Positions 11,287 to 49,818 of a DNA stretch of 64,000 nt are shown one piece after another; position 1 is the stretch's first letter; every line of letters starts with the position of its first letter. The position numbers and the translations under genes were made by a program. Under the pieces are notes generated by a model that did not search any database, had not been told where the DNA came from, and worked only from the letters and a program-made list of their open reading frames with translations. Location of the stretch: sequence record OQ603353.1; one strand, written 5' to 3'.

Positions 11287-11712
11287 TTAGCCGCCGCTCG
11301 CCTTGGCGATAGCGGTCAGCTTGAGGTTTTCCGACAGCTTGCGGTCAAGCGCAACCGGCTTACCCTTGTCGTCCTGATACTTGAAGTTCTCGTAGCCAGT
11401 ACCGCCGCCAGCCTTGATGGCCGAACGCACGGTCGAGCCTGCGGTGGCGGAGCCGGTGACGGTCAGCTTGCCAGTGACCTGCACGGTGTAGGTGGCGACT
11501 GCCACTTCCGCCGCCGGAACGTCCGTCACTTCCGTGGTCGGACTGGCAGCTGCGGTAGCTTCTGCCTGACCTTCACTACCTGCTGCCGGGACACTGACGT
11601 TTCCATCAGTCGCGGTGCTGGTTTCCGAATTGGTTCCAACGGTGACACTACCTTCGGCAGCGACGTTGGTGGCTTCTTCGTTGTTCTGGACGTTCTTTTC
11701 ATTGGTGTTCAT
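11287..11712 (-). CDS. Ubiquitin-like (beta-grasp) protein with C-terminal GG
   Basis: Low-complexity T/A/E N-terminal half, then TYTVQVTG-KLTVTG-STVRSAIKA-FKYQD-GKPVALDRKL-LKLTAIAKASGG-stop; adjacent to E2 and E1. Confidence 0.75.
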   Translation of the reverse strand: MNTNEKNVQNNEEATNVAAEGSVTVGTNSETSTATDGNVSVPAAGSEGQAEATAAASPTTEVTDVPAAEVAVATYTVQVTGKLTVTGSATAGSTVRSAIKAGGGTGYENFKYQDDKGKPVALDRKLSENLKLTAIAKASGG

Positions 11713-11757
11713 CGTTTCGATTCCTTGAGATACAGGGATTGGTTACTGCCTGACGTA

Positions 11758-11781
11758 GCAGGGAGGATCATTCCTCCCTGC
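11758..11781. other. Perfect 10-bp stem-loop GCAGGGAGGA/TCCTCCCTGC
   Basis: Intergenic, upstream of Ubl, no U tract; same outer arms as the hairpin at 57742-57766. Confidence 0.6.
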
Positions 11782-11797
11782 GAGATTACTGCCGAAC

Positions 11798-12238
11798 TTA
11801 CTTGACCTTCTTCTTGCCCTTCTTGCCCTTCTTCTTCTCGCCCTTCTCCGGCTTCTCAGCCTTGCCGCCCTTCGACTTCTTCTTGGCAGCCTCTTCGGCC
11901 TCACCCACGAACGAAACGTTCGTGTTGGCGACGACGTAGGTATCACCGTTCTCGGCCACGAACGTGGTGAAGTTGCCCTTCACTTCGATGGTGTCCGGCG
12001 CCACCTTGATGTTGGCCAGTTCCGCACGCGGATTCACGACCGCGATTTCCACCGAACCGTCTTCACCAACAGCGGCGTACTGCACGTTGGTGCGCGGGAT
12101 GACAGCCTGCTCGAACTTGGACGAACGCGGGCGCTTGTAGTGGACGGTGATCTGATTCGCGTCTTCCGCGACCACGGTGCCTTCGATGGTGCGGATGGCC
12201 GGCCCGTACAGGGTGGCGGTATAAATCTGCTTCGACAT
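11798..12238 (-). CDS. Beta-rich protein with Lys-rich tail; paralogue of 12988-13767
   Basis: TATLYGPAIRTIEGTVV...ITVHYKRPRSSKFEQAVIP aligns with TVTIQHPGIVEVYGEVI...ITLRRRIHRSRGKFEDVTYP. Confidence 0.75.
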   Translation of the reverse strand: MSKQIYTATLYGPAIRTIEGTVVAEDANQITVHYKRPRSSKFEQAVIPRTNVQYAAVGEDGSVEIAVVNPRAELANIKVAPDTIEVKGNFTTFVAENGDTYVVANTNVSFVGEAEEAAKKKSKGGKAEKPEKGEKKKGKKGKKKVK

Positions 12239-12264
12239 TGTGATACCTCAGAGGTTGGGTTGGA

Positions 12265-12936
12265 TCAATTGGAGGAACGAATGAGTTCCAAGAAACGCCG
12301 GTTGACGAGGCCCTGCATGGTTTCGTCAAAGGTGGCGAGCTTGCGGCGAATCTTGAGGTCTTGCTCAAGATCACCCCGACGCGTTGCCTCAAACAAGGCG
12401 AGCGCCGTTTCTTCGATGGGCAGGCCCCGAACCAGTCGCGTCGTGCGCGCTGGGCAGTTCTTGTTGCCACTCATGTAGTGGCATTCCTTGTACGCCTTGA
12501 GTTGCTCCGAACGCTTCTGATCGGTACTCACCAAGTGGGTGCACTTGAAGCACCACGGCTTGTCCATGATGAGAAGGTTCTTGGCCGAGTCGTCAATCTC
12601 GATGGGGACTTCATCAACGTCGTCGTCCTCCGGGATGACTTGGGAGGTGAAGGAAGGCGTAGCGCCGACCACCTCGACAGGAATCTCCCGACCAGTAACT
12701 CGCGGCTTGACCGGCAGAACGACTTCGGTACCTTCATCCTCGTATTCGTCCGCGTCCGCACTGGAGACTTCCGCAGCCTTGCGCAGCTGCTTGTCCACTA
12801 GCGCCTCAGTCAGCGCTACCGTGATTGCGGAATCATGCAGTGCCTTGGCAGCGGGTTCCGCCTTGCGCTTTTTGAGTCGAGGACGATCTTCCTGGGTTGC
12901 TGCCTTGGTTGATGCCTTGGTCTTTGCCATGTTCAT
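12265..12936 (-). CDS. Hypothetical protein with possible Zn-binding Cys/His cluster
   Basis: WCFKC...ECH...NCP motif after a basic/acidic disordered N-terminus. Confidence 0.7.
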   Translation of the reverse strand: MNMAKTKASTKAATQEDRPRLKKRKAEPAAKALHDSAITVALTEALVDKQLRKAAEVSSADADEYEDEGTEVVLPVKPRVTGREIPVEVVGATPSFTSQVIPEDDDVDEVPIEIDDSAKNLLIMDKPWCFKCTHLVSTDQKRSEQLKAYKECHYMSGNKNCPARTTRLVRGLPIEETALALFEATRRGDLEQDLKIRRKLATFDETMQGLVNRRFLELIRSSN

Positions 12937-12987
12937 TCACCTGTCTTCGTGGAGGGGCACGTCCCCTCCGATTTCTGTAGCGAAGAC

Positions 12988-13767
12988 TCACTCGTCTTCG
13001 TATTCGTCTTCATCTTCGTCATGCTCTTCCACTTCCACTTCTTGTTCGGATTCTTCTTCGTCTTCTTCATCCTCTTCGTCGTCTTCATCGTCATCGTCAT
13101 ATACAGGCGGCAACGGCTTTGCGGGCTTCACTACCTTCTGTACTGGCTTGGTAGGGAAGGGAGGCGCATCATCTTCTTCCTCGTCCTCGGTATCGTCCTC
13201 TTCCTCAACAGGAGGTGCAGGCGGCGCTACCTTCTTCTTGCGTACCGGACGTTCTTCCTCTTCATCCTCATCCTCTTCCTCGCGGCGCTTCTTGTACGTC
13301 CGCTCGGGAATATCTTCCGCACTACGAATCTGCACAACACTGGTGATGCTAGGATGGCACAAATGAATTGTACCGTCTTCTTCATCAGTCAGTACGTACA
13401 TGCCACCCTGGACTTCAAAGTCGCTGACCTCAAACACGTCATACTCATGGTTCGGGTCATCAATCAGCAGGGTTGCCTGGGGTTCGTTGATGTAGAACGC
13501 TGCCTTGACTGCTGACAGCGGATAGGTCACGTCTTCAAACTTGCCACGGGACCGATGGATGCGGCGACGCAGGGTAATGTGAACGTCACTACGGCTAATC
13601 ACCTCACCGTAGACTTCAACGATTCCCGGATGCTGAATGGTTACAGTAAAGGGAATCTTCTTGACCGGCTTCTTGTGGGCCTTTGCCTTTTCCAACTTTT
13701 TCTTGGTCTTGACCTTTTCCGGCACAGCCTTCTTGGTCTTGGTAGGCGCAGGCTTGGTTTTGCTCAT
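12988..13767 (-). CDS. Beta-rich protein with basic N-terminus and long acidic tail; paralogue of 11798-12238
   Basis: See the paralogue alignment; C-terminal poly-D/E. Confidence 0.75.
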   Translation of the reverse strand: MSKTKPAPTKTKKAVPEKVKTKKKLEKAKAHKKPVKKIPFTVTIQHPGIVEVYGEVISRSDVHITLRRRIHRSRGKFEDVTYPLSAVKAAFYINEPQATLLIDDPNHEYDVFEVSDFEVQGGMYVLTDEEDGTIHLCHPSITSVVQIRSAEDIPERTYKKRREEEDEDEEEERPVRKKKVAPPAPPVEEEDDTEDEEEDDAPPFPTKPVQKVVKPAKPLPPVYDDDDEDDEEDEEDEEESEQEVEVEEHDEDEDEYEDE

Positions 13768-13806: not shown

Positions 13807-13815
13807 TATTTACAG
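13807..13815 (-). promoter_or_regulatory. CTGTAAATA phage promoter-like motif
   Basis: 40 nt upstream of the 13767 start; heads the gene run that contains Ubl-E2-E1. Confidence 0.6.
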
Positions 13816-23000: not shown

Positions 23001-23009
23001 TATTTACAG
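23001..23009 (-). promoter_or_regulatory. CTGTAAATA phage promoter-like motif
   Basis: 15 nt upstream of the 22986 start. Confidence 0.55.
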
Positions 23010-26928: not shown

Positions 26929-26949
26929 AATCGACCCATTCGGGAAACG

Positions 26950-26983
26950 AAAAGGGGCCACCAAGATCGCTCCCGGCAGCCCC
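26950..26983 (-). terminator. Intrinsic terminator closing the modification operon
   Basis: GGGGCUGCC/GGUGGCCCC stem then UUUUCGUUU. Confidence 0.75.
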
Positions 26984-26988
26984 TAAAT

Positions 26989-27837
26989 TCAGCCTAGTTT
27001 GAAGTCGATGCCCACAGCCACCTTGCTAGTGACCGGATGCACGCCACGTAGGACTGAGGAAATCTGCCGTTCAAACAACGGGGCTTCCCAATCCAAGTAC
27101 GTAGTGGTATCACCATGACGGACGACTATTTCCGCATCCTCTAACAGCGGCGCACCTACCAACTCTGCCACGCCTGCTGCATTCGGATTGTACATTGCGG
27201 CTACTTCGATCACGTCATCGAACCCTAGCACTTGAACTTCACCACTCCAATTTACTGGAGTAGTTGCGGCATGGTCTACCTTTGCAGCCACGTCGAAGCC
27301 ACGCTGCCATCCGATGATGCTCATCAGATGGAAGCCTAGATCGTACTTGATTACATGGTTCCATTGAGAACCATCGGTAGGCATGTTGTTGTGGTACATA
27401 GCCAGCGCAGTGATTGGTTCGTGCACGTCTGCCAGTTTGGAATGGTAAATCCATTCGGCGGAAACAAGCACACGATCATCAATCACGTCTGACTTATACG
27501 GCTTCTCACACAGCACGCGAGACTCAGGGAAGCATTGTACGGACTGCCTAACCATCAGGTCATGAGTGCTATCTGGCGTGGCGATGATAATGAGGTCCGG
27601 AGCATTCCACGTACTCATCATTGCGCCAGTCAGTGTTTTGTATACTGGAACCTGACGCTCCAGCACTGCTTCTTCGTAGAACGAACCCCACTGATTAACC
27701 AGCACCGATCTGCTGTAGACTTCACTAGCCTTGGGGTTCACGTCTACGACAAAGGACAGCGTATGTCCGAGATTCAAGGCAGCGATGGCGTGAGCTTTAC
27801 CCACGCCAAGGCCACCTACAATTCCAATGCGCGCCAT
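26989..27837 (-). CDS. Gfo/Idh/MocA-family NAD(P) oxidoreductase
   Basis: RIGIVGGLGVG Rossmann motif, IIATPDSTH, VLCEKP. Confidence 0.85.
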   Translation of the reverse strand: MARIGIVGGLGVGKAHAIAALNLGHTLSFVVDVNPKASEVYSRSVLVNQWGSFYEEAVLERQVPVYKTLTGAMMSTWNAPDLIIIATPDSTHDLMVRQSVQCFPESRVLCEKPYKSDVIDDRVLVSAEWIYHSKLADVHEPITALAMYHNNMPTDGSQWNHVIKYDLGFHLMSIIGWQRGFDVAAKVDHAATTPVNWSGEVQVLGFDDVIEVAAMYNPNAAGVAELVGAPLLEDAEIVVRHGDTTTYLDWEAPLFERQISSVLRGVHPVTSKVAVGIDFKLG

Positions 27838-27840
27838 TGC

Positions 27841-28950
27841 TTAGTTCGGGTAGCGGTCGTTGTCGAGCAACTTGGTCAGGCGAGTGGTAATCGTGTGCTC
27901 AAACGCATTGACCTGCACGAACACTGGGGCCAGCAACACGTCGAACAGAGTGTGGCGTACCCAATCCTTACTCAGGAGTTGGGCTGCATCTTCCAGCGTG
28001 TAGTACAGGTGCTCGTCGCGGTACATGTATGGGTAGCACGCGCGGTTGGGCACTACCGGAATCGCGCCTAGGACCACTGCATCAATAACGCTGTAACCGA
28101 AAGTCTCCAGCGTTGCAGAGCTAAACAGGAAACTCAGTTTCGCCACCTCGGTCCAATACTTGTCCTTGGTATCACATAGGACGAACTCAATACCTGCATC
28201 CACCGCTTCCTGATACAGTGGTGCGGTGTCGAGGGGGACCGGGTGCAGAACGCGGAAGGTGCGGGTGTCGCCAAGACGATGGGCCAGTTCGATGAAGTCT
28301 TCGGGGCGCTTATCCTCTGCCCAACGATGGCTCCAGCCCACGACAGGCTTTGCCTCTTCAGCACGCGCAGTCAGCGAACGGCGCAGCTGCGCAGGGTTGG
28401 TATCTTGTGGGCTAATGACCGGCAGACCAATGACGTTGACGTTGGTGGAGTTTAGTAGGTCCACTCCATAGTCGGTAGCTACGTAGGTTTCGGTGAAACA
28501 ATCCAGCAGGGTTTCTTCGAGGCTGCGTACCCACGAGCCTGCCGAATACAGGAAGTCACCCGGAGTCTCAACGCTGCTATGGAAGAAGCCGGTCAGGTGG
28601 GCCTTGATGCCTGCGCAGTGCATGTGGAACTTGAGCACCGGAACGGCAGGCGACCAACCATCGGCAAAGTAAACCACGTCGCCATCAGCGATGTGATCCA
28701 GCACACCCAGCACACCCTTGCAGAACGATTTGGTCATCGTCTCGTCGGAGTAGAACATGGACTGCGACGACATGCTGTTGAATTCTTCGCCGCTGTTCAC
28801 CTCAACGACTTCAAACTCATGACCGTTAAGGGTCCGAGTCTTGTCTGCTGCGGTTTGGCGGAGGGCGGCGATCACCTTGTTAGTGATCCACTTCTCAGGG
28901 CGGAAGTCCGACTCGGGACTGCGAACTACAATGATCTTCTTCACTTTCAA
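27841..28950 (-). CDS. GT-B (GT4-like) glycosyltransferase with GTDC1/QTMAN-like motifs
   Basis: WSHRWAEDKRPEDF and KDKY...FSSATLETFGYSVIDAVVLGAIPVVPNRACYP...HLY. Confidence 0.85.
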   Translation of the reverse strand: MKVKKIIVVRSPESDFRPEKWITNKVIAALRQTAADKTRTLNGHEFEVVEVNSGEEFNSMSSQSMFYSDETMTKSFCKGVLGVLDHIADGDVVYFADGWSPAVPVLKFHMHCAGIKAHLTGFFHSSVETPGDFLYSAGSWVRSLEETLLDCFTETYVATDYGVDLLNSTNVNVIGLPVISPQDTNPAQLRRSLTARAEEAKPVVGWSHRWAEDKRPEDFIELAHRLGDTRTFRVLHPVPLDTAPLYQEAVDAGIEFVLCDTKDKYWTEVAKLSFLFSSATLETFGYSVIDAVVLGAIPVVPNRACYPYMYRDEHLYYTLEDAAQLLSKDWVRHTLFDVLLAPVFVQVNAFEHTITTRLTKLLDNDRYPN

Positions 28951-29555
28951 TCCTCTTTGAACTTTCGGTGGTGGAGGCTGCGAGTTACCTCAACATGAAG
29001 CGACGGTCCGCGCTCTCCCTTTTCATGCAACACGAACGACTCTGCAATCAGATCGAAGTTGCCGATCATATACATTTCGCGCTCGTAGATTTGCAGGCAC
29101 TTGCTCTTGGCTTTGGTTTCGCTGTAGAGCGTGAAGTCCGGCACCTTATAGTTGAATGCAGGCACCAGCACGGATGGGCGCTCCTTGACTGGCAGCATCG
29201 ACCACGCGAGCATGGTGTGCTTATGTAGCTCCCGATGATGGCGGTGGCCATACTCACCGTTCGGGTTGTGCGTTACGAGGTAGTTGTACCCATTGTGCAA
29301 CTGCTGATAGATGTTCTCCACCAGCAGCGCAGTGTCCTCGGTCAGCGTGCCTTGGTAATCGTCGTCCAACGCAAGCTGGATACCCCTCGATTTCAACACC
29401 TTACAGGCGGCAAGGAATTCCTTGCCGCGTGCAGTGCGATGACCGTAAGTGGCACATAGATCGTGCCACTCGATATGAGGCGTGGCCTGCCGGATGTTGT
29501 GGCCGAAAATGAAACTGTCATCCGGGTGGGCCATTACAATCAGTGCTTTCATCAC
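28947..29555 (-). CDS. PIG-L/LmbE-family N-acetylhexosamine deacetylase
   Basis: MAHPDDS and THNPNGEYGHRHH metal-binding motifs. Confidence 0.85.
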   Translation of the reverse strand: MMKALIVMAHPDDSFIFGHNIRQATPHIEWHDLCATYGHRTARGKEFLAACKVLKSRGIQLALDDDYQGTLTEDTALLVENIYQQLHNGYNYLVTHNPNGEYGHRHHRELHKHTMLAWSMLPVKERPSVLVPAFNYKVPDFTLYSETKAKSKCLQIYEREMYMIGNFDLIAESFVLHEKGERGPSLHVEVTRSLHHRKFKED

Positions 29556-31075
29556 AGTCCTACTAGCGGCGCGTCCTGCATATACTTTACAGGATCGTCC
29601 TTACCAATCATGGCAAACGCGGTTCGCCGCAACTGGCATGGGCCACAGTTTCCGCAATGAAGCTCACCGCCGTGGTAGCAACTCCAGCTAAGATGGATCG
29701 GCGCTTCAAGCAGCAGACCCGTCTGCGCCACTTCATGCTTCATCAGCTTGTCCAGAGGGTTGACCAACTTCGGAGCGGCCTTGGAGCCAATGGCGATGGC
29801 CTTCTCCATGAGGTCGAAGAACTCCTTCTCGTTGTCTCCGAATGCGCCTGCTTCTTCAAGATTGGCGCCGGTGTAGATTGCACCAAAGCTCCACCGATCA
29901 GCATATGCTGCCATCATGGCGACCATCAGGCCATTACGGAATGGCACCCACTCATTCGCGTATTCGATGCCGTCCTTGCCGGTTGCCACTTCCATCGTGT
30001 CGTCCACCAGCGGGTTGCCACCCAGCTGCTTGAGGAAGTCAAGGTCGAAGAACTTGAGGGTGATCGTCTTCCTGGGATGACGTTCAACCAGCGCAGCGTG
30101 GATAGCTGTCACTGCCTCTGTCTCGCGCGTCTGTGCCCGGCAGCCATAATGGAAGTGGGCGAGCACGATATTGGTGTGATCCCGACAGGCGATTTCTGCA
30201 CTAACCGTGCTATCCATACCGCCGGACAGAATCACGATGGCGCTCTCAGGATTGCCACCGTTCGGATCCTTGTCGAAGCGAGTGGTTGCCGCCTTGCCTA
30301 CGAAGAAGGAGTTCCGGTCGTGGTGGCCATTGAACTTCCAAGTCGAGTTGGCGGCGATGTGGAAGTCAGTATACATGCCATCCCGAATCAGTGCACGCGT
30401 AATGGCCTGACGTTCACTGGCGAATACCACCGCAGCGGCGTTTTCGTGGAAGCCAAAGCTAGGGCACACAGCGGAGAGGGGCCGATAGTTGCGGGCGAGC
30501 CACAGCGTATCAGTCTCCACGTCGTAGACCGCTGACGCGACAGAACCGATCAGGCTTTCAAACTCGCCACGCTCAACCGCGTAGGGAATCGCAGCGCTGT
30601 CCACCTTGGTGCGGGAATGTTCCGGGATGAATTGCGCATCGTTGGCGATGACGCCGTTGTGAACAGCGAAATAGCGTTCAGCGGGCCAGTTGGCGTAGGG
30701 CTGAATGTCATCCTCGCGCTGGTCCTGTAGCCATTCAGTAGTCGGCTCGGCTCGGCAGTTTGCGATCAGGGTGAAACTTCTCACCTCGTTCGGAGTCATG
30801 GCGTCGAGGTTGCGCATCATGATCTGCACCTGACTGATTACAGCCAGTGCACGTGCATTGAGGTCAGGATGGGTATCCCGAATCGAACGGAACGACTGAC
30901 GCTGGAATACGCGATGTGTGCTGCCATCAAGCGACGTGATGAAGGCAGCGTAGCCCATTGCATCACGGCCACGCTCGCAACTTTCAACAGCCAGCGTCAT
31001 CAGTGCGTTGAAGACGACACGCTTCTGCTGTGCGTCAGACCAACGCAGGTTATGGACACCGAAAATGGAACACAT
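29552..31075 (-). CDS. queC: Glutamine amidotransferase class II - QueC fusion (Gat-QueC)
   Basis: N-terminal Ntn Cys (MCSIFG), RGRDAMG, NCRAEPT, HNGVIAND; QueC SGGMDS PP-loop, VPFRNGL, NLEEAGAFGDN, Zn site SCY...HCGNCGPC. Confidence 0.92.
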   Translation of the reverse strand: MCSIFGVHNLRWSDAQQKRVVFNALMTLAVESCERGRDAMGYAAFITSLDGSTHRVFQRQSFRSIRDTHPDLNARALAVISQVQIMMRNLDAMTPNEVRSFTLIANCRAEPTTEWLQDQREDDIQPYANWPAERYFAVHNGVIANDAQFIPEHSRTKVDSAAIPYAVERGEFESLIGSVASAVYDVETDTLWLARNYRPLSAVCPSFGFHENAAAVVFASERQAITRALIRDGMYTDFHIAANSTWKFNGHHDRNSFFVGKAATTRFDKDPNGGNPESAIVILSGGMDSTVSAEIACRDHTNIVLAHFHYGCRAQTRETEAVTAIHAALVERHPRKTITLKFFDLDFLKQLGGNPLVDDTMEVATGKDGIEYANEWVPFRNGLMVAMMAAYADRWSFGAIYTGANLEEAGAFGDNEKEFFDLMEKAIAIGSKAAPKLVNPLDKLMKHEVAQTGLLLEAPIHLSWSCYHGGELHCGNCGPCQLRRTAFAMIGKDDPVKYMQDAPLVGL

Positions 31076-31080
31076 GTGGG

Positions 31081-31875
31081 TTACTCCGTGGGGTCGAGCA
31101 AGACCGGAACCTTGCGCTCAAAAGGAATGGGCTTCCACGTCTTCTTGTAGTCGAAGACGGCGAGGCCGAGGTTGAGATACAACACGTTCGCCTTGTAGCA
31201 CAGGCGTAGGGCTTGCAGGAGCATCACGTTCCCGACGGTGTACTCCTTGGCGTATTGGTCACGCAGGAGCAACGTGTTGACCCAGTGATACTCATCGTTC
31301 TCTGGGCACATTTGGAACATGCCAATGCCGCATGGGGTGAACTTGCCATCCTCGCTAGGACGGAAAACCAGCACCACGTCACTGTTGGGAATCAGCGACC
31401 ATGCAGCGATGTATTCAAGGTATGCCACCGCCGTTTCTGTCGCACCTTCAAACGTCATGCCCGGATTGAAGTGTTGCAGGTTCGAGACGATGATGTGGAT
31501 GAGTCCAGCCTTGAACTGGTCAAACTCCCCACCACGCGCGGGATGGAACATGAGGTTGGCCGTGTTCTTCCAGCTGCGCTTCAATTGCGACAGTGATTGC
31601 AGGTGCGCCTCAAAACTGGGACGGCTTGCAATGACACGAACCTCTGGACGCATCGTGTGCGCCAGATTGTCCGACAGGTTCAGCACCTCATCGTAGAAGG
31701 CAGGGAACTCAGTGTCGCCCATAGGGACAAGTATGGTCCCTGCGTCTTCGGTATGGACTTCCTCAACGGTAAAGCCATTCGGTGCGGCGACCGGCTTGAA
31801 GGGTAGGCCCTTATTGCGCGCCAGAACCTCGCGGTATACGCGGTACTTCTCGAAGGCTGCGCGAACGTTACTCAT
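31081..31875 (-). CDS. FemAB/BioF2-like GNAT (Acetyltransf_6-type) paralogue 1
   Basis: FEAHLQSLSQLKR and GNVMLLQALRLCYKANVLYLNLG...DYKKTW; start moved to ATG 31875 (GGAG, overlap). Confidence 0.7.
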   Translation of the reverse strand: MSNVRAAFEKYRVYREVLARNKGLPFKPVAAPNGFTVEEVHTEDAGTILVPMGDTEFPAFYDEVLNLSDNLAHTMRPEVRVIASRPSFEAHLQSLSQLKRSWKNTANLMFHPARGGEFDQFKAGLIHIIVSNLQHFNPGMTFEGATETAVAYLEYIAAWSLIPNSDVVLVFRPSEDGKFTPCGIGMFQMCPENDEYHWVNTLLLRDQYAKEYTVGNVMLLQALRLCYKANVLYLNLGLAVFDYKKTWKPIPFERKVPVLLDPTE

Positions 31876-32911
31876 AAACCCATGCTCCTGCTTGGTAGTA
31901 AGGAGGCCACATTTTCTCTTTGGGGGTGGCCGAACAAATTGCGATACCTGCATACGTCATCGTGTCATTACACACGGGACGCTTGTACTGACTGTAGGTG
32001 TGGCCTTCCACAAAGTCAGCAGCCAGCGTGGTATCAATGATGGCGGTCCCCGTCTCCGGCCGCTGTAGGTAATACTGCACAGCATGCGCCAGAACCGCAG
32101 TGCCCAGCCCATTCGGAGCATCGTAGGTGGAGTCCTTGAAGAAGCCAACGAACACGCGACGATTGACGCGCTTCACAAACGTACCGACTGCCACAAGGCG
32201 CAAGCCATCGTAAACCTTGATGGTGTCGCACCCTGAACCAGCAGCCACCGACATTGCCAGCGGTAGCAGCGAACCTTCCACTACCAACGGATGCCACGTA
32301 GAGCACGTCTCTGCTGTCTGCGCGCTCCAGTGTTCCTGCATCCACTCGGCGATGACTGGAATCTCGTAGTCGAACAAGGGCTCGACCTCAAACGTGAGGT
32401 GCTCGGATACGCGCAGCTTCTGGCGTACCTGTGCTCTACGCTTAGTGGACAGAGACGTGAGATATTCATCCCACGTCATGACACCGGCGCGATCACGATA
32501 CCCTAGGTACACCACGTCCGACTTGAGTGAGTAGATTTCTCGTGGGAAGTCTTCGCCGTATCTATGTGGGCAGTCAAGGGCAGGAGGTGCGACGACTGCA
32601 TTATCCTGCTCAAAGGTTGGGATGGATTGAGACAGGTCGATCAAGGTGTTCTTGATTTGATCGACCGTACCTAGCATGAAGCCGGTTGCCATCCCCATAT
32701 TGGTGAACCCTGCGTACAGGGTTCCGTCCGGGTAAGACTCAACAGCGATTGAGCCGTCCGTGCTCACGTAGAGCGGCTTGTCCGCATAGGAAGGTGCAAG
32801 CTTTCTGCGGAGCTTTACCCACTGTGCTTGCACGTCCTTATCTAGCTCAGGGTAGATCGAGTTTGAACATCCGAAACGTTCAATGTAATGCTCGGCAGTC
32901 ATTACGTGCAT
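31868..32911 (-). CDS. FemAB/BioF2-like GNAT paralogue 2
   Basis: WDEYLTSLSTKRRAQVRQKLR; LGTAVLAHAVQY; YKRP. Confidence 0.75.
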   Translation of the reverse strand: MHVMTAEHYIERFGCSNSIYPELDKDVQAQWVKLRRKLAPSYADKPLYVSTDGSIAVESYPDGTLYAGFTNMGMATGFMLGTVDQIKNTLIDLSQSIPTFEQDNAVVAPPALDCPHRYGEDFPREIYSLKSDVVYLGYRDRAGVMTWDEYLTSLSTKRRAQVRQKLRVSEHLTFEVEPLFDYEIPVIAEWMQEHWSAQTAETCSTWHPLVVEGSLLPLAMSVAAGSGCDTIKVYDGLRLVAVGTFVKRVNRRVFVGFFKDSTYDAPNGLGTAVLAHAVQYYLQRPETGTAIIDTTLAADFVEGHTYSQYKRPVCNDTMTYAGIAICSATPKEKMWPPYYQAGAWVYE

Positions 32912-32913
32912 GG

Positions 32914-33789
32914 TTATTCCTTTGCAGTGTTGTTCAGCAGTGCGTGGCGCAACTTGAGGATGCTTTCGGGATGAGTCAAGTCGCGGTCAGTACGCGCGTG
33001 GAAGAGGGAGCCCCGGAAGGTGCTGTAGCTGACGCCGTATTCCACTGCCGTAACCTGCGCACCCTTGACGTAAGACACCACCGCAGTGTGGAAGGTACGC
33101 GAGAAGTAATCTCGGATGTTCCACATTTGCTTATAGGTGTCATCCCACACAGAGTAGTGCTGGTCCGGTAGCAGATTACTCAGGTCTTCCGGCACGATAC
33201 CAGCAGCGCCGTCGAGGATCAGCAGATACCACTTTTCACGAATACCGAGTTGGGTCAGGAGGTTCTGAGTCAACTCGATGATTTCAGGATTGTTTGGAAC
33301 AACCAGCACGTGCGGTCGCGTGGGAGCGTACAGTTCCCTAGCAGCTTCGATACCTATGACCTTGGCACGACGCTCTGCCATCACAGGGTTAGGTACGAAA
33401 TCGTGCTCGGGCTCAGCGAACTCGTAGCCCCTGCGCGACTGCGGGATGGGCGTTTCCGAATCCAGCAGACGCAGCACGATGGAGGTTTCGGGGCGAATGG
33501 CACACATGGCTTCCAACACAACCTCGGTCATGTTGCGGCCGTAGTCTGCTGCCTGCCATGCAGGACCAACAATCTCATCGCCTTGCAGTTCGACCGTGGT
33601 GCTGCCGATAGCGAAGCACAGGTAGGTCAGCAGTGGAGCCCACGAACTCGGCACACCTTGCAGCGTGTAGTTGCCATCCAGCGATGCTAGATAGGACAGC
33701 GTGTTGACCAGTTCAGGCAGGCTCTTGGAATCCGGACTCAGCTGCGAGGATGCGCCGTCCTCAGTTTGGGAATGAATCTCAATCTTCAT
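32914..33789 (-). CDS. Unknown protein inside the modification operon
   Basis: 291 aa, tightly coupled to both neighbours; no family recognised. Confidence 0.75.
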   Translation of the reverse strand: MKIEIHSQTEDGASSQLSPDSKSLPELVNTLSYLASLDGNYTLQGVPSSWAPLLTYLCFAIGSTTVELQGDEIVGPAWQAADYGRNMTEVVLEAMCAIRPETSIVLRLLDSETPIPQSRRGYEFAEPEHDFVPNPVMAERRAKVIGIEAARELYAPTRPHVLVVPNNPEIIELTQNLLTQLGIREKWYLLILDGAAGIVPEDLSNLLPDQHYSVWDDTYKQMWNIRDYFSRTFHTAVVSYVKGAQVTAVEYGVSYSTFRGSLFHARTDRDLTHPESILKLRHALLNNTAKE

Positions 33790-35416
33790 GCTTCAACCTC
33801 TTGTAGTAGTAGAATGCGTCCGTGCTATCAAGGTCATTACCAAACGAATCTGTCTTGTCATCGTAGTAGCCTACGACAGGCAGGCTCTGCTCAAACCCGA
33901 GGGCACGATACAGGCGCTTGGCAGGATCGTTGGTAACCGAAGTGTGCAAGGCAACGCCATCAAACTCATTCGACAGCAGCGCGAACGCCTTTTGCATCAT
34001 CTGCCTACCGACACCGTGGCCACGCATCTGCTCAGTGACGTACACAAGGTCGATATAGGCGTTCGGATTAAATTGGTTGAAAACAATGTAGCCGATGGGG
34101 TTCCGATACCGCCACCTTGCGACAAGAATCCGAACCCTTCCGCCCTCACGTGCCGTCATCAGGATGTGCGACAGCTGATTGATCGTCTCAAGATCGAAGG
34201 TGTTGAGGTCGTCTTCCCCGAACAGTTCAGAAGTCAGCTTGAGGAACTCAGCCAGCTTGATCTCCGACACGTCGATCTGATCGTTCCACTTGCTGTCCAG
34301 CTTCTTCAACTCCCATCCCTTACCACGGATGTATACCGGAGGTTCAAAGCCGTACTCAGCGCAGTAGTTGCCTGCGCAGAAATCCGAATCCACCACAGCG
34401 TAGTCGAGGGGAACGATGGGCAGTTCAAAGCCTACCGGAATGAACTTTTCCTTGTAGGTACCTTCGGTGTCTAGGTGGTAATACTTTACGTCGAGCGGCA
34501 GTTCTTCCGCAATGAATCGGATCGCCTCGTAGATGGCGAGGAAGCCGATGCGACGCTTCTTGTACTCTTCGTAGCTCACACCCGGCACGGCCAGCTTGTC
34601 CACGTACACAGCGCCACGCACTTCACCGATGTTGGTGCAGATGAGGCGGTTGTCCGCGTCGTAGATATTGAGGACCAACGCATTACGGTCCTCAAGGTTA
34701 TGCAGCATGTTGTTGATGTGGATGATGTTGGTGACGTTATCATCCGAGGTGTAGGTCCACCGCTCAAGGTTGGCGGTGTAGTTCTTGTGGAAGTCAGCAG
34801 ACTTCATCACGTCGCGCAGGCTAACCTGCTCCACCCGAACGCCTTCGTTCAGGCGCATCACAGCACGATAGTTCTCCCGGTTCTTCTTCGACAGGGAGGC
34901 AACGTAGCTTTCCATCGATTCGGGGATGTAGAGGCCATAGGACTTGTCATCCTGATAGCCATACTCACGCGGGTAGATCGGGAAGTAGTTGACGATCATG
35001 CAGGGCGGCAGCTGCTCAAACACGTCATCCAGAAATTCTGGCAGCGCCGGTGGGACGCTGACTTCAAAGTAGCTCGCACCAAACAGGTCAAACTTGGCTT
35101 GCTTGAGGGGATCACGGGTGTTCCACAGATCGTGCAGGATCGTATGGCCTACCATCTGCCCGGTGTTCAGGTCATACACATTCGTAATCACCAGCACGCT
35201 TTGATGCACAAAGTTTGCCAGCAGTACCGAAATGTATTCGTCGTAGGTGGGCAGCAAGTCACCAAAGATGCCCACACCATCAAGTGCTTTGACCCGATGC
35301 AGGTACTGCTCAAACTTTGCCTTCGGGATGAGCTTCACAACGTCAGCGGTGGGTGCGACAACATGCTGCTCGCCGAACACCCGATCAGTGCGAAACTCGC
35401 GCAGTCCGTAATTCAT
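33779..35416 (-). CDS. FemAB-like GNAT paralogue 3 fused to a RimI-like GNAT
   Basis: MESYVASLSKKNRENYR; C-terminal YIDLVYVTEQMRGHGVGRQMM...NDPAKRLYRALGF (acetyl-CoA motifs A and B). Confidence 0.8.
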   Translation of the reverse strand: MNYGLREFRTDRVFGEQHVVAPTADVVKLIPKAKFEQYLHRVKALDGVGIFGDLLPTYDEYISVLLANFVHQSVLVITNVYDLNTGQMVGHTILHDLWNTRDPLKQAKFDLFGASYFEVSVPPALPEFLDDVFEQLPPCMIVNYFPIYPREYGYQDDKSYGLYIPESMESYVASLSKKNRENYRAVMRLNEGVRVEQVSLRDVMKSADFHKNYTANLERWTYTSDDNVTNIIHINNMLHNLEDRNALVLNIYDADNRLICTNIGEVRGAVYVDKLAVPGVSYEEYKKRRIGFLAIYEAIRFIAEELPLDVKYYHLDTEGTYKEKFIPVGFELPIVPLDYAVVDSDFCAGNYCAEYGFEPPVYIRGKGWELKKLDSKWNDQIDVSEIKLAEFLKLTSELFGEDDLNTFDLETINQLSHILMTAREGGRVRILVARWRYRNPIGYIVFNQFNPNAYIDLVYVTEQMRGHGVGRQMMQKAFALLSNEFDGVALHTSVTNDPAKRLYRALGFEQSLPVVGYYDDKTDSFGNDLDSTDAFYYYKRLKHED

Positions 35417-36246
35417 TTCTTCGTTCTCAGGTAACGTGCATGGTTGAATACTTGCGTGGCGTCGAGGGCCTGAATGCCATCAAACAAAGGAAGGTTGGAC
35501 CCAAGGGCATTCGTAGCTGCGTCCTTCTTGATGCGCTCCACCCAATCGCGGAAGTCGAGGCCATCCATATCCATAGCGCCGAGGGCACCGAGGTGTGGGG
35601 CAAACGTTTCCATATCGACAAGGCGCTTGCCCGCCTGACCGGCCCACAGGTCCAGCGCGACCATTGCAGCCTTGGATGCGTTCGGGGTCAGGGAGAACAT
35701 GCTGTCTACGCTAATGTAAGTGGGGAAGTTTAGGCCGAACAGGCCACCTACGATTTCGCCTTCTGCGTTGAGCACTGTGACCGAGTACGCTTTACGTTCC
35801 TTACCATAGTGGAGTGCCTTGTATGCACGCTGAGTAGGAGTATCGAGCCATTGCGTGTACTCGTCTGCATCCTCTTCCTTATCTTCCGGACGCTCAACCG
35901 TAGCGCAGTGGTGAATCACCTTGTCGAAGCCGACGTTCAGCTGGTAGTTCCAACCCTGCTTGCGAATGAACTGCTCGGTAGTCTTGGAAACGTGCAGGCC
36001 ACCAACAGGCAGCACGGCTCGGCGACCGCTGACTTCCCAAATCCATTCGGATTCATCCTCTGTGCCAACGAACCCCATCGGGTGCGCCTGCGCCCTGTCT
36101 GCCAAACCATACAGAAGGTGCGGCGTCATTTCTACGGTCCAGCAGTAGTCGTCATCATCCAGCGGGAAGTGCTCTGCATTGATGTGGCGAACGTCGTTCA
36201 AGTCGTACAGCTTGAACGGAATCTTAGTGTCGCTCGAAGTGTCCAT
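35413..36246 (-). CDS. aat: Leucyl/phenylalanyl-tRNA-protein transferase homologue
   Basis: RAVL..GGLHVSK, FDKVIHHCA, AYKALH, VGGLFG, DSMFS...NASKAA, LVDME...HLGALGA follow the E. coli Aat pattern. Confidence 0.85.
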   Translation of the reverse strand: MDTSSDTKIPFKLYDLNDVRHINAEHFPLDDDDYCWTVEMTPHLLYGLADRAQAHPMGFVGTEDESEWIWEVSGRRAVLPVGGLHVSKTTEQFIRKQGWNYQLNVGFDKVIHHCATVERPEDKEEDADEYTQWLDTPTQRAYKALHYGKERKAYSVTVLNAEGEIVGGLFGLNFPTYISVDSMFSLTPNASKAAMVALDLWAGQAGKRLVDMETFAPHLGALGAMDMDGLDFRDWVERIKKDAATNALGSNLPLFDGIQALDATQVFNHARYLRTKK

Positions 36247-36946
36247 TCAGTTCGTTTCCGTAAAATTCAGTAAGGGTCATACCAAGGTGTGCAGTTTCGT
36301 CAACGGTGTCTGCCTCAATGGAAGCAGAATCCCAAGGAGTGCGCTGAATGAAACTGTTCAGGTGCTTGCAGAGAGCATCGAATGCTTCCCGATTCGTGAT
36401 GAATCGCTTGGCGTGATCGTCACCTTCGCGCCCAGCGTTCTGGATGACCATGACAGGCTCACCCTTGAACCACACGGAAGCCAGCCTCCAGAAGCGGCGC
36501 GGATCGAAGAAGAATTCCTTGAGGACGCGCACTTCAATCTCGGTGTCTTTGTGAAGCGCCTCCATATCGAAGTCGCTGAGTTCTACGTCTAGGCCACCCT
36601 TTAGATGGTTGAAGTAGAAGCCACGCAGAGCGTAAATGGCCGGCTCAACCTTATCGAAGTTTTCGATGGCGTAGACTTCCTCGCAGGTAAAGGGAACCTT
36701 GGCAGCCTCGGCCCTAGCCAGCTGATCCGCCTTGTACTCATTGATGGCGTCTACAAGTTGAGTGACCTCACGGTCCCCCTGTGCACCACCGTCCACCTCC
36801 TCCATCTTGATTTCCACACCGATACTTTTCAGCATGGGCTCAATCTTTACGAGGGCCTGTATGTAGTGCATCGGTCCTAGGCCAGCCTCAATAGCTGCAT
36901 AGACTATGTGGGCAGGCTTGAACACAATCACAGTTTGTTCCGACAT
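36224..36946 (-). CDS. Hypothetical protein, first gene of the modification operon
   Basis: RRFWRLASVWF.GEPVM.IQNAGREGDDH..RFITN motif; follows a CTGTAAATA motif. Confidence 0.75.
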   Translation of the reverse strand: MSEQTVIVFKPAHIVYAAIEAGLGPMHYIQALVKIEPMLKSIGVEIKMEEVDGGAQGDREVTQLVDAINEYKADQLARAEAAKVPFTCEEVYAIENFDKVEPAIYALRGFYFNHLKGGLDVELSDFDMEALHKDTEIEVRVLKEFFFDPRRFWRLASVWFKGEPVMVIQNAGREGDDHAKRFITNREAFDALCKHLNSFIQRTPWDSASIEADTVDETAHLGMTLTEFYGNELNGHFERH

Positions 36947-36972: not shown

Positions 36973-36981
36973 TATTTACAG
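36973..36981 (-). promoter_or_regulatory. CTGTAAATA phage promoter-like motif
   Basis: Between a terminator and the modification operon. Confidence 0.65.
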
Positions 36982-36994
36982 GATCGGGAAACGC

Positions 36995-37024
36995 AAAAGG
37001 GGCAGCCGCTAGGCCACCCCCTTT
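36995..37024 (-). terminator. Intrinsic terminator
   Basis: GGGGUGGCC-UAGC-GGCUGCCCC then UUUUG. Confidence 0.8.
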
Positions 37025-39466: not shown

Positions 39467-39766
39467 TTACCAGCGGATTGTGGTGCCTTTGATGAAACCG
39501 GAACACGCTATGCCTTCTACCTTGGCACCTTGAGGGGACGTAGCGCGGAACTTGGCACGGAAGGTGTCGCTGTCAGCGCAACCTAGCCATGAATAACCGA
39601 GGTATTCAACGTCGGTGTAGCCCTGCGCGTGCAGAGCCTCCACCATCTTGCCCTGCCCGAAGGCTCGCGTTTTCAGCGGACCTCCGAGGAAGAAGATCGC
39701 CAAGAGGGCGATCACTGCGACTACGATGAGGAGTTCGATCAGAGTAAAGCCCGATTGCTTCTTCAT
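39467..39766 (-). CDS. Small protein with type IV prepilin N-terminal methylation signal
   Basis: MKKQSG/FTLIELLIVVAVIALLA; two-Cys C-terminal domain. Confidence 0.8.
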   Translation of the reverse strand: MKKQSGFTLIELLIVVAVIALLAIFFLGGPLKTRAFGQGKMVEALHAQGYTDVEYLGYSWLGCADSDTFRAKFRATSPQGAKVEGIACSGFIKGTTIRW

Positions 39767-44766: not shown

Positions 44767-45024
44767 TCACCTCAGCTGGGAGTCTTTCGATCCGCGACGG
44801 TTGTAATACGTTTCGCCAGTAACGGCGTACTTGCTTTGACAGCATACACACCGAGTTGCGTTGGGCATCGCCTTACGGCGTGCGAGGGGAATGGGGTTGT
44901 CGCAATCCACACAATCCTCAGTGCCCGTTCCTTGTAGCATCAGGCGCGCTCGATCAATCGCGTTGTTAACCGTTGCGTCAATCGTATCCTGCACGCCATC
45001 TGCTGGTCCGAAACCTACTGCCAT
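44767..45024 (-). CDS. TraR/DksA C4-type zinc-finger protein (YbiI-like)
   Basis: GFGPADGVQDTID...CVDCDNPIPLARRKAMPNATRCVCCQ. Confidence 0.9.
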   Translation of the reverse strand: MAVGFGPADGVQDTIDATVNNAIDRARLMLQGTGTEDCVDCDNPIPLARRKAMPNATRCVCCQSKYAVTGETYYNRRGSKDSQLR

Positions 45025-48196: not shown

Positions 48197-48433
48197 TCAG
48201 GTTGCTTCGCTTTCCGCACCCGAAGTGACTTCGGTTGGGCTAGTTGACTTGGCAAACGGCACGCCGCGCTGGATGCGTTCGTGGACTTCCTGACGATTGA
48301 CCGGGGTTTCCTTCGGTGCGTCAATACCGATTTTCACTTGATTGCCCTTGACACCAAGGATACGCACCGTAGACATATTCGAGCCGGTGCCAATCATGAC
48401 TGCTTCACCAATGCGGCGAGTAAGAAGCAACAT
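48197..48433 (-). CDS. csrA: Carbon storage regulator CsrA/RsmA
   Basis: [15 protein letters not shown]...[33 protein letters not shown]. Confidence 0.95.
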
Positions 48434-48691: not shown

Positions 48692-49051
48692 CTATACCTT
48701 ATTTACAGTATCCGAGCTACCCATTTGAGCGAAAGCGGAACGCCAACTATCCATGCGTGCCTGCTTTTCTGGATCAAGGGGCAGGCTGTGATAGAAGGGG
48801 TCATGGTCCTTGACCGTCCTCCCCGTGATGGTCAGCATGGTCACGTCGTTCGACCGCACCGCACAAGAGCGCAGGCAACCGGGACATATGTGAACGTACT
48901 CCTGCCCGTGAGGCACATACAGCATCATCGGCGGTTCATGCTCAGGATGCTGGCACGGCTTCCACGCTTCCTGCACGGGGCGCATGTGGGATTGGATTTT
49001 CTCTTCCAGTTCAGAGAAGTCCGTCTTGATGGTAAGCTGTTGCTTGTTCAT
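48692..49051 (-). CDS. Hypothetical protein with CxH/CxxC cluster
   Basis: PCQHPEHEPPM...HICPGC; ATGA overlap start. Confidence 0.6.
   Translation of the reverse strand: MNKQQLTIKTDFSELEEKIQSHMRPVQEAWKPCQHPEHEPPMMLYVPHGQEYVHICPGCLRSCAVRSNDVTMLTITGRTVKDHDPFYHSLPLDPEKQARMDSWRSAFAQMGSSDTVNKV
48700..48708 (-). promoter_or_regulatory. CTGTAAATA phage promoter-like motif
   Basis: Heads the 260-nt non-coding region and csrA. Confidence 0.6.
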
Positions 49052-49254
49052 TGCTCGATCATCCCAAGTTCTTGGGCCCGAAGAAGAGCCACGTGTTTCG
49101 TGTTGGCTTCCCACAGGATCGAATCGGTCCGATGCTTGGCCACGTCGGGGTCATGGTTGAACTCGTTCATCAACGCCTGACCATAGCGCTGATGCTGCGG
49201 CTTGGTGCCGAAGAACTTCTTGTCGAAAGCGACCAGTGCGTTTGCGGAAATCAC
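49048..49254 (-). CDS. Small hypothetical protein
   Basis: RYGQALMN motif; GTGA overlap start. Confidence 0.55.
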   Translation of the reverse strand: MISANALVAFDKKFFGTKPQHQRYGQALMNEFNHDPDVAKHRTDSILWEANTKHVALLRAQELGMIEQ

Positions 49255-49613
49255 TTTGCCTCCATAGCATCGGCGAGGGTCAGGGTTGCGACATAGGGGA
49301 CCGCAACCGTGGACATTGCGATGAACTCCCAATCACCCATCGGATCAGGCGGTACGAAATGCGCGTCCTTGACCTGAACTCCCTTGCTTTCCAGATAGCG
49401 GAGCACTTCGTTGCGCCAGTCTTCATTTGCCATCCACTCCCACCCACCTAGGTCCGTATTGCGACGGGGCAGGCGATAGAAGCGTACCACGCGATCCTGC
49501 TGTGCAGCTTCGGCAACCAGCGAGACGAAACGCTCGGCTGCCTCGAAGCCAGTCTCAGTGGGCACAGCACGGCCGATGATGGGAAGGGAGCGAAGGGTGG
49601 CGATCAGTTTCAT
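49251..49613 (-). CDS. Hypothetical protein
   Basis: AAGGAG RBS before ATG 49613. Confidence 0.6.
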   Translation of the reverse strand: MKLIATLRSLPIIGRAVPTETGFEAAERFVSLVAEAAQQDRVVRFYRLPRRNTDLGGWEWMANEDWRNEVLRYLESKGVQVKDAHFVPPDPMGDWEFIAMSTVAVPYVATLTLADAMEAK

Positions 49614-49818
49614 TCGGTTCTCCTTGATCGGGCGCATGACCCGACAATTCCTGAGTCAGTAGATTGGCCAGCGCGGCCATGTGTTGTTGAATGATGCTTT
49701 GCTGCTCACGTTTCTGCTCGGTGGGAGAAAGAGCGGACAACTCGATCCGCTTCTTCCAGAGCGCCGCGTTACACTCACGTGCAACTCGACCAACGTGTTC
49801 CCGCGTTTTCTTATTCAC
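49555..49818 (-). CDS. Hypothetical protein
   Basis: GTGA-coupled; tail overlaps the next gene. Confidence 0.45.
   Translation of the reverse strand: MNKKTREHVGRVARECNAALWKKRIELSALSPTEQKREQQSIIQQHMAALANLLTQELSGHAPDQGEPNETDRHPSLPSHHRPCCAH

Follow-up and report, generated by a model that had tools for sequence, protein, structure and literature searches.

A ten-gene jumbo-phage operon around Gat-QueC may tailor an archaeosine-type base with an amino sugar and amino acids

A ten-gene operon in Xanthomonas phage Ep026

Xanthomonas phage Ep026 (OQ603353.1, 227,420 bp) carries ten minus-strand genes, p1 to p10, running from the 36946 end to the 26989 end of a 10-kb region within the 64,000-nt stretch of DNA analysed here (the window, whose base 1 is base 62,001 of that record). 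The genes surround a Gat-QueC enzyme of 7-deazaguanine synthesis with sugar and acyl-transfer functions, and we describe how they may together elaborate a modified guanine (Table 1). The operon region is 100% identical in Ep026 and Erwinia phage Ep032, and 96.6–99.9% identical at the DNA level in Xanthomonas phages PhiXhv-15, -16 and -12; no match beyond these five was found among 50,697 phage genomes compared at the DNA level. The annotated PhiXhv-15 record (PV764602.1) serves as a stand-in for the genome outside the window.

A sequence-only reading of the window had described ten tightly coupled genes, bounded by a motif at 36973 and a terminator at 26950. The open reading frames (ORFs) lie exactly there, with p1-to-p10 junctions of -23, -4, -11, +2, -86, +5, -4, -4 and +3 nt, and a hairpin followed by a T-run is read at each end. 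The long p5/p6 overlap shrinks to about -8 nt when p6 begins at the ATG at 31875. The mechanical p6 ORF begins 26 codons upstream (31875-31953) of the start of its homologue in the metagenomic contig L009, and the matching ATG at 31875 is probably the true start. The motif CTGTAAATA is enriched, occurring seven times in the window and on the minus strand only (0.17 expected; none of 100 shuffles reaches seven). The copy before p1 sits after the upstream hairpin, with AAGGAG and the p1 ATG (36946) following 20–35 nt downstream, and CTGTAAATA is likely a phage-specific promoter element marking a class of genes that includes the operon. Because of the short junctions, CTGTAAATA and the flanking hairpins, it is credible that p1–p10 form one transcription unit, within a block of leftward genes of about 72 kb.

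Most domain assignments of the sequence-only reading stand, namely Aat, Gat-QueC, PIG-L, Gfo/Idh/MocA, GT-B, the p3 fusion and the Fem-like p5; p6 proved only weakly Fem-like. Of the two proteins that it had left as unknowns, p4 now falls in DUF5591, the core of archaeosine synthase (ArcS), and p1 keeps no function beyond its match to phrog_8664.

Table 1. Features of the operon and its borders, in window coordinates (values in the last column are E-values unless given as bits)
Feature	Position	Strand	Basis
Terminator-like hairpin (G+C) and T-run, end of the upstream gene	36989..37021	-	GGGGGTGGCCTAGCGGCTGCCCC then TTTTGCGTTT, read from sequence
Candidate phage promoter element CTGTAAATA	36973..36981	-	motif count and position
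Seven copies of CTGTAAATA	1284-1292, 1590-1598, 6897-6905, 13807-13815, 23001-23009, 36973-36981, 48700-48708	-	window count
p1, no function assigned, 240 aa	36224..36946	-	phrog_8664 (unknown function) 3.8e-21, residues 126-234
p2, homologue of Aat-like leucyl/phenylalanyl-tRNA-protein transferase, 277 aa	35413..36246	-	PF03588 1.9e-30
p3, N-terminal Fem-like GNAT and C-terminal RimI-like acetyl-CoA GNAT, 545 aa	33779..35416	-	Pfam, NCBIfam
p4, stand-alone member of DUF5591 (ArcS core), 291 aa	32914..33789	-	PF17884 via homologues
p5, Fem-like GNAT, homologue of the p3 N-terminal domain, 347 aa	31868..32911	-	hhalign
p6, probable Fem-like GNAT, about 264 aa	31081..31875 (ORF to 31953)	-	weak profiles, co-conservation
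p7, Gat-QueC: class-II glutamine amidotransferase fused to QueC PP-loop ATPase, 507 aa	29552..31075	-	Pfam, phrog, motifs
p8, PIG-L family de-N-acetylase, 202 aa	28947..29555	-	PF02585 3.5e-7, 31.2 bits against a cut-off of 28.2
p9, GT-B glycosyltransferase (GT4-like, retaining type), 369 aa	27841..28950	-	AlphaFold2 (AF2) model and Foldseek
p10, GFO/IDH/MocA-type NAD(P) oxidoreductase, 282 aa	26989..27837	-	PF01408 4.8e-9
Terminator-like hairpin and T-run directly 3' of the p10 stop	26945..26983	-	GGGGCTGCCGGGAGCGATCTTGGTGGCCCC then TTTTCGTTT, read from sequence

Enzymes of the deazaguanine core

The two halves of p7 match the Pfam families QueC (4.4e-49, residues 279-490) and GATase_7 (5.9e-8, residues 118-226), and the protein aligns with phrog_10428 almost end to end (1.5e-83, positions 1-501 against 1-474 of 476). 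It is collinear with the Gat-QueC proteins of Nonagvirus, Seuratvirus and Vid5 at 31-33% identity and 98-99% coverage (33% over 99% for Nonagvirus/Seuratvirus), and its motifs are intact: Cys2 (MCSIFG), the SGGMDS PP-loop and the zinc cysteines C-x8-C-x2-C-x2-C. By homology, p7 belongs to the family that yields 7-cyano-7-deazaguanine (preQ0) and the archaeosine base (G+) in 9g-type phages, and it probably converts 7-carboxy-7-deazaguanine (CDG) to preQ0 and then to G+.

A search of the whole genome for folE, queD, queE and dpdA/tgt, none of which the sequence-only reading could see in the window, recovered all three core genes and a divergent TGT/DpdA-like protein. PhiXhv-15 carries FolE (1.3e-27), QueD (PTPS, 1.6e-16) and a radical-SAM protein, labelled 'GTP 3',8-cyclase', that has no Pfam match and matches phage QueEs at 1.6e-14; FolE, QueD and QueE are all present in Ep026 itself, outside the window. 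The phage probably makes its own deazaguanine core, comprising CDG, preQ0 and, probably, the archaeosine base. An alternative offered earlier, in which the QueC-fold enzyme would amidate a uronic acid, is unlikely, because p7 is collinear with 9g-type Gat-QueC and CDG synthesis is encoded in the genome. Downstream of QueD in PhiXhv-15 come genes for an MmcB-like DNA repair protein and for a NADAR-domain protein of 373 aa (1e-13; L002 18121-20236); just upstream of this group are the genes for a sigma factor, a recombinase and the TGT-like protein.

The operon holds a second deazaguanine-specific enzyme, p4, which the first reading had not seen. ArcS attaches lysine, through its epsilon-amine, to the preQ0 nitrile (PMC11298593). 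Alone, p4 matches PF17884 (DUF5591) at only 0.052; its homologues in contig L008 and Vibrio phage GR7B do so at 3.8e-5 and 2e-6 (the latter with 28.2 bits against a gathering threshold of 26), and a five-sequence p4-family profile retrieves 55 proteins, nearly all of them PF17884 members (1e-53 to 1e-87). Typical DUF5591 members adjoin QueC, FolE, QueD and DNA polymerase in phage contigs; a TGT-like or PUA domain is absent from p4. DUF5591 versions that bear a PCxxDKPY-type stretch, taken here as the ArcS signature with approximate spacing, go with two stand-alone QueC paralogues, and versions lacking it go with Gat-QueC. This pairing suggests that Gat-QueC took over amidine formation in the Xanthomonas-phage lineage.

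The TGT-like protein of 568 aa is encoded at 11630-13336 in PhiXhv-15 and at 223280-224944 in Ep026 (99.6% identical), outside the window, and only synteny with Vibrio phage GR7B revealed it. Its counterpart there, the GR7B 'TGT domain protein', shares 37% identity with it over 447 aa (5e-111) and itself matches Pfam TGT (PF01702) at 2.3e-5. The 568-aa protein contains the catalytic motif DSGGFQ and the zinc motif CxCPxC...HN, and its profile matches ArcTGT (1IQ8) at 1.5e-5 across both. Its tail is rich in lysine; for a PUA domain, no match was reported. Homologues occur in vB_PpuM phages of P. putida, NCTB, BCSR5 and Achromobacter phage Motura. No DpdA emerged when the ORFs surrounding preQ0 genes in Cellulophaga phi3ST:2, HVTV-2 and Campylobacter CP20 served as queries, and TGT was absent from the results of a Pfam scan, at E<=0.01, of 51 PhiXhv-15 hypothetical proteins encoded inside and outside the window. 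Homology shows that the phage has a predicted base-exchange enzyme of the TGT family. A DpdA-family protein is present in every phage known to have 7-deazaguanine in its DNA and serves as a signature of that modification in viral DNA (PMC10516641).

Sugar genes and acyl-transfer genes

In p8, we read the metal-binding motif AHPDD and an HRHH motif, and the PhiXhv-15 annotation labels the protein BshB2-like. While p9 itself has no Pfam match, its homologues P0089 and P0092 carry Glycos_transf_1 (PF00534); the family has 14 members among 5.8 billion proteins. An AF2 model from a 14-sequence alignment (predicted local distance difference test score 86.7, predicted template modelling score 0.87) gave 330 matches in the Protein Data Bank (PDB) at E<=0.001, with MshA and BshA in the lead. 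The top folds are MshA (3C4Q), BshA (3MBO), OtsA and the tetrahydrobiopterin glucosyltransferase BGluT, all retaining GT-B enzymes (E about 5e-10). DNA glucosyltransferases are not among the best folds, and a 'DNA alpha-glucosyltransferase' appears once among the BFVD matches, at rank 38. The products of MshA and BshA are substrates of PIG-L enzymes. Because of these fold neighbours and the PIG-L partner, we infer that the p9 donor is uridine diphosphate N-acetylglucosamine (UDP-GlcNAc). The BGluT match had also suggested a pterin glycoside pathway, which we rejected because QueE and QueC commit the pathway to deazaguanine. In p10, the Rossmann motif GIVGGLGVG and an EKP motif (CEKPY) are present and the C-terminal domain is unmatched.

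Among the acyl-transfer genes, only p2 belongs to a family defined by aminoacyl-tRNA chemistry. Its match to TIGR00667 (1.5e-23, 83.3 bits) lies below the equivalog cut-off of 143.55. Aligned to genuine Aat, it keeps GGLxG, (D/E)SMFS, SK, VD and HLxxLGA, has Q replaced by E after VD, and carries an N-terminal extension of about 60 aa; a single-sequence scan of IMG/VR found no relatives. In p3, the N-terminal domain matches Acetyltransf_6 (PF13480; 4.7e-6, residues 178-305, 27.2 bits against 22), and the C-terminal domain matches GNAT (PF00583; 1.7e-14, residues 429-508) and rimI (3.1e-9), with an R-G-H-G-V-G acetyl-CoA motif read in the protein. Only three p3 clusters exist among the 5.8 billion proteins, contig L025 holds a homologue (4.5e-69), and an alignment-based scan of IMG/VR found no relatives. 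The presence of p1 follows that of p3: it occurs wherever p3 does in the window, L009 and L008 (40% identity in L009, 35% in L008), and it has no match in Pfam or NCBIfam.

A 23-sequence p5 profile aligns with the p3 N-terminal domain in hhalign (90.5% probability, E 1.4e-6, 189 columns), and distant p5 members match Acetyltransf_6 (0.0018) and FemAB_like (0.044). The protein is rare, with only 22 hits among 1.84 billion representatives and no relatives in scans of IMG/VR (single sequence) and JGI metagenomes (alignment-based). No other partner of the QueC gene is co-conserved as widely as p6, which is found in L009, L008, GR7B, L023 (2.3e-41), L025, L026 and, as a fusion, L024. Searches of PDB sequences with p4, p5 and p9 (single or three-sequence profiles), and with p5 and p6 family profiles, returned chance hits only. 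The Fem-like GNATs p3, p5 and p6 are presumed to use aminoacyl-tRNA; the Fem-like protein of L023 also matches ATE_C, an arginyl-tRNA transferase domain.

A cassette conserved across giant phages

Synteny across related phages, which the sequence-only reading had named as a check, showed that, in several divergent lineages of giant phages, a QueC-family gene is conserved together with the sugar and aminoacyl genes. In contig L009 (Logan ERR6221067), the full set of ten is preserved in unchanged order at 40-83% identity; L008 (8.9 kb) contains p1, p3, a new gene of 309 aa, p4, p5, two QueCs and p6. Gat-QueC, p6, PIG-L, the glycosyltransferase (GT) and the GFO/IDH/MocA-type oxidoreductase (GFO) occur together in four independent metagenomic giant-phage contigs. 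These comprise L023 (an Acetyltransf_6/ATE_C protein, Gat-QueC, p6, PIG-L, a small GNAT, GT and GFO), L024 (Gat-QueC, GT, GFO, a PIG-L-p6 fusion, a p5-like gene and an ATP-grasp gene), L025 (Gat-QueC, p6, a PIG-L-like gene, GT, GFO and a p3-like gene) and L026 (GFO, Gat-QueC, p6, PIG-L, GT, FolE, a p5-like gene and an ATP-grasp gene), the last with FolE inside the cassette. The fusion in L024 (11918-13525) is a 535-aa protein with an N-terminal PIG-L domain (2.6e-5) and a C-terminal p6-like domain; as Rosetta-stone evidence, it implies that deacetylation and the p6 step are consecutive.

In every context examined, covering five lineages, Gat-QueC lies zero to three genes from a p9 homologue, and in one case their stop and start codons overlap. 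Distant GT homologues directly adjoin TGT-like genes and QueE in Burkholderia phage BCSR5 and Pseudomonas phage PA5oct. Such recurring adjacencies, together with the PIG-L-p6 fusion and the FolE gene inside one cassette, tie the sugar and acyl-transfer genes to the deazaguanine enzymes in function.

The Vibrio phages GR7B and GR11A have a related cassette of DUF5591, QueC1, QueC2, a p6-like gene, a p5-like gene, an uncharacterised 697-aa gene, a KamA-like radical-SAM gene and a small GNAT, which sits amid genes for DNA ligase, Rep helicase, DHFR and topoisomerase. The KamA-like protein is of the lysine 2,3-aminomutase family (Radical_SAM 3.1e-11, LAM_C 6e-8; GR7B L013 18854-20002, GR11A L017 16829-17977), and it recalls the use of lysine by ArcS and its radical-SAM partner RaSEA. 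Genes flanking the Vibrio cassette (L013 20665-21539) have homologues beside the PhiXhv-15 DNA ligase (88857-89992), where there is no cassette. The cassette therefore behaves as a movable module in a shared jumbo-phage backbone.

Proposed pathway and its alternatives

We propose that the operon is the tailoring half of a jumbo-phage 7-deazaguanine modification system, and that its product is a glycosylated, aminoacylated and N-acetyl-capped archaeosine-type base in phage DNA, a proposal to which we give an even chance. The TGT/DpdA-like enzyme would swap guanine in phage DNA for the deazaguanine, either before or after tailoring; the small-molecule acceptors of the fold neighbours of p9 leave room for assembly on the free base, with insertion afterwards. 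Tailoring would take place on the C7 side chain in a sequence like that of mycothiol and bacillithiol. The MshA/BshA-like GT4 enzyme p9 would add an N-acetylhexosamine (GlcNAc, by the same logic), p8 would remove the acetyl group to free the amine, and p10 would oxidise a position on the sugar. Free amines would then be acylated with amino acids from aminoacyl-tRNA by p6, p5, the N-terminal domain of p3 and p2, and the RimI-like domain of p3 would cap the last amine with acetate. The ATP-grasp ligases in L024 and L026 appear to add to or replace the aminoacyl-tRNA step. Because p4 is without the PCxxDKPY stretch, its role may be limited to binding the base, with amidine formation left to Gat-QueC.

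Such a bulky base would shield DNA from restriction and other nucleases. The virion DNA of PA5oct resists five restriction enzymes with G in their sites, which has been read as a modified G of undetermined chemistry, and the modified G of PA5oct-like phages is a target of END-type nucleases (PMC12191111). The assembly line that the sequence-only reading had sketched has gained from both genomic checks, which came out in its favour, and from the ArcS-like assignment of p4; its aminoacyl-tRNA step stays an inference for the Fem-like GNATs.

Several observations weigh against this proposal. The TGT-like protein is highly divergent: alone, it scores E 0.07, under the Pfam threshold, it could not be assigned to any of DpdA1-4, and phmmer with DpdA1 queries (BRET, DoCa3) and DpdA2 queries found no DpdA. 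The operon lies 10 kb from the nearest replication gene and outside any deazaguanine cluster. The PCxxDKPY stretch is deleted in p4 and its L009 homologue, whereas L008, GR7B and GR11A keep it as VPCAxDKPYP. All of the nearest structural neighbours of p9 use small-molecule acceptors and not nucleic acid. The fold call for p6 is weak (Acetyltransf_6 at 0.097 for the GR7B homologue and at 0.14; hhalign to p5 at E 0.004), and membership in an Acetyltransf_6-type family does not establish the acyl donor of the Fem-like GNATs. The only paper on PhiXhv-12, -15 and -16 reports Illumina sequencing and nothing on DNA modification or the operon genes. Finally, the only tRNA of the genome is tRNA-Asn(GTT) (PhiXhv-15 145891-145966; L004 11892-11967), one of the four tRNA families that receive queuosine.

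That tRNA points to a different target for the same elaborated deazaguanine. The TGT-like protein could insert it at the wobble position of the phage tRNA-Asn(GUU), or of host tRNAs with GUN anticodons, and so retune translation; we consider this unlikely. Queuosines bearing a sugar or an amino acid (galactosyl-, mannosyl- and glutamyl-) do occur in tRNA. The best solved relative of the TGT-like protein is ArcTGT, a tRNA enzyme, and ArcS works on tRNA-borne preQ0 (PMC11298593). However, a single tRNA, when four families are possible, counts for little, and neither the TGT-like protein nor p4 has a match to PUA or another tRNA-binding domain, the TGT-like protein being polylysine-tailed instead. 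Related cassettes lie amid ligase, helicase, topoisomerase and polymerase genes, and PA5oct, which owns a TGT-like/GT pair, is reported to have modified G in its DNA. The phage deazaguanine systems tested so far modify DNA (PMC6884629, PMC10516641).

Two further explanations separate the sugar chemistry from DNA to different degrees. The phage may place plain dG+ or dPreQ0 (the deoxynucleosides of G+ and preQ0) in its DNA, with a linked but separate sugar and aminoacyl pathway that serves a virion glycan, the host envelope or a conjugate like mycothiol or bacillithiol. A glycosyltransferase, a PIG-L enzyme, an amino-acid ligation and a GNAT do constitute the logic of mycothiol synthesis, the p9 fold is closest to MshA/BshA, p8 is annotated as BshB-like, and only p7 and p4 in the operon belong to deazaguanine-specific families. 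We nevertheless find this arrangement quite unlikely: Gat-QueC keeps within three genes of p9 homologues in five lineages, FolE lies inside one cassette, distant GT homologues abut TGT-like genes, and p5 and p6 accompany QueC and DUF5591 in phages without sugar genes. In addition, no p5 relative was detected among 185,579 bacterial and archaeal species genomes (GTDB, alignment-based). Alternatively, the product may be a free, diffusible, glycosylated and peptidylated 7-deazaguanine that never enters nucleic acid and inhibits host or competitor functions or acts as an anti-defence molecule. Glycosylated natural products of the preQ0 or pyrrolopyrimidine type exist (compare huimycin and dapiramicin), tRNA-dependent aminoacyl transferases function in nucleoside-antibiotic pathways, the enzymes closest to p9 in fold, the pterin glucosyltransferase among them, have small-molecule substrates, and the genome has homologues of the anti-defence proteins Tad3 and Acb1. 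All these phages, however, conserve the TGT-family enzyme, whose gene borders the GT in two lineages, the operon contains no exporter or self-resistance gene, and the cassettes lie in neighbourhoods of DNA metabolism; we consider a free metabolite unlikely.

Modification of phage DNA is the reading that we favour, and its most detailed form goes further. In this form, guanine in the DNA of this group of jumbo phages is replaced by an archaeosine-type base that bears an amino sugar extended by a short, acetyl-capped peptide, which Fem-like and Aat-like enzymes build one residue at a time from aminoacyl-tRNA. It would be the first nucleobase modification to depend on aminoacyl-tRNA transferases, made by a modular cassette with three interchangeable modes of amine attachment (ArcS-type coupling, tRNA-dependent transfer and ATP-grasp ligation). 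We hold this complete version tentatively, as a possibility that is somewhat more likely to be wrong than right.

Relation to known systems

The closest known system is the dG+ pathway of phage 9g and the Queuovirinae (FolE, QueD, QueE, Gat-QueC and DpdA1). [quoted passage not shown] In contrast to the one-cluster layout of that system, the genes here are scattered over a 227-kb genome. The transglycosylase is a 568-aa protein too divergent for DpdA1 or DpdA2 queries, and Gat-QueC is embedded among nine other genes, whereas the Queuovirinae are without tailoring genes. Membership of p4 in DUF5591 likens the operon to the ArcS/RaSEA system of Euryarchaeota, which joins preQ0 and lysine, and to stand-alone viral ArcS cores. 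Unlike ArcS, p4 is without the TGT-like and PUA domains and the PCxxDKPY stretch, and the ten-gene operon has no RaSEA-type radical-SAM gene, while the Vibrio version has a KamA-like one.

The proposed order of GlcNAc transfer, deacetylation, acylation of the amine and N-acetyl capping parallels mycothiol and bacillithiol synthesis (MshA/BshA, MshB/BshB, Cys ligase and MshD). The acceptor here would presumably be a deazaguanine and not inositol phosphate or malate, there is an extra oxidoreductase, the setting is viral, and amino acids would arrive via aminoacyl-tRNA (Aat, Fem-like) or ATP-grasp enzymes and not via a CysRS paralogue. The acyl-transfer genes resemble FemXAB and the Aat/Ate transferases, p2 through the Aat family and p5 and the N-terminal domain of p3 through Acetyltransf_6/FemAB-like folds. 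Those enzymes act on peptidoglycan precursors or protein N-termini, whereas the presumed acceptor here is the side chain of a modified nucleobase, a use for which we know of no Fem, Aat or Ate precedent.

A 7-deazaguanine side chain that bears a hexose or an amino acid is familiar from galactosyl-, mannosyl- and glutamyl-queuosine. Those reside in tRNA, are made by unrelated enzymes and carry one substituent, while the base proposed here would carry a sugar and several amino acids. Multi-step decoration of bases as a counter-defence is likewise known from phages, including glucosylated hydroxymethylcytosine in T4 (which uses a GT-B enzyme), amino-acid-derived hypermodifications of thymidine and momylation. 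These have pyrimidine or adenine targets, and none employs aminoacyl-tRNA transferases or a PIG-L deacetylase. Eight 7-deazaguanine derivatives are, to our knowledge, known in phage DNA, all with small side chains, and our literature search turned up no DNA deazaguanine described as glycosylated or aminoacylated. Modification of DNA with 7-deazaguanines is thus known; not described in the literature that we found is the combination of GT4, PIG-L, oxidoreductase, Aat, three Fem-like GNATs, a capping GNAT and a motif-less ArcS core.

Other genes of the phage

At 7833-8516 (minus strand) of the window lies a gene annotated as 'thiamine biosynthesis protein', which we considered as a second QueC near the operon and rejected: it is a ThiF/E1-like adenylyltransferase (PF00899, 9e-21). 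It adjoins an uncharacterised 892-aa gene (8529-11207, minus strand), so a ubiquitin-like or adenylation system may be present. An acyl carrier protein is encoded at 1295-1564 (minus strand) according to the PhiXhv-15 annotation, and GR7B has acpP near its TGT-like gene. By the same annotation, the window contains homologues of CsrA (48197-48433), a DksA-like zinc finger (44767-45024), an ankyrin-repeat protein (49251-49637) and a type IV pilin-like protein (39467-39766), which look like candidate host-takeover genes. The Pfam scan of the 51 PhiXhv-15 hypothetical proteins identified the anti-defence families Tad3 (4.4e-27) and Acb1 (1.1e-16), an ADP-ribosyltransferase (2e-8), an SPFH/Band 7 protein and a spermine-synthase-like domain.

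Biological significance

If the proposal is true, a derivative with both sugar and peptide widens the known chemical range of DNA, and nucleobase side chains become a new class of acceptor for Aat and Fem-type aminoacyl-tRNA transferases. The cassette also displays natural enzyme swaps, with Gat-QueC exchanged for two QueCs and an intact ArcS core, Fem-like enzymes for ATP-grasp, and the sugar module for a KamA-like radical-SAM enzyme. The same product would be a likely chemical identity for the modified G of PA5oct-like phages. PhiXhv-12, -15 and -16 are under development for biocontrol of bacterial leaf spot in lettuce, and a bulky modification of their DNA would bear on their host range, their sequencing and their resistance to host restriction.

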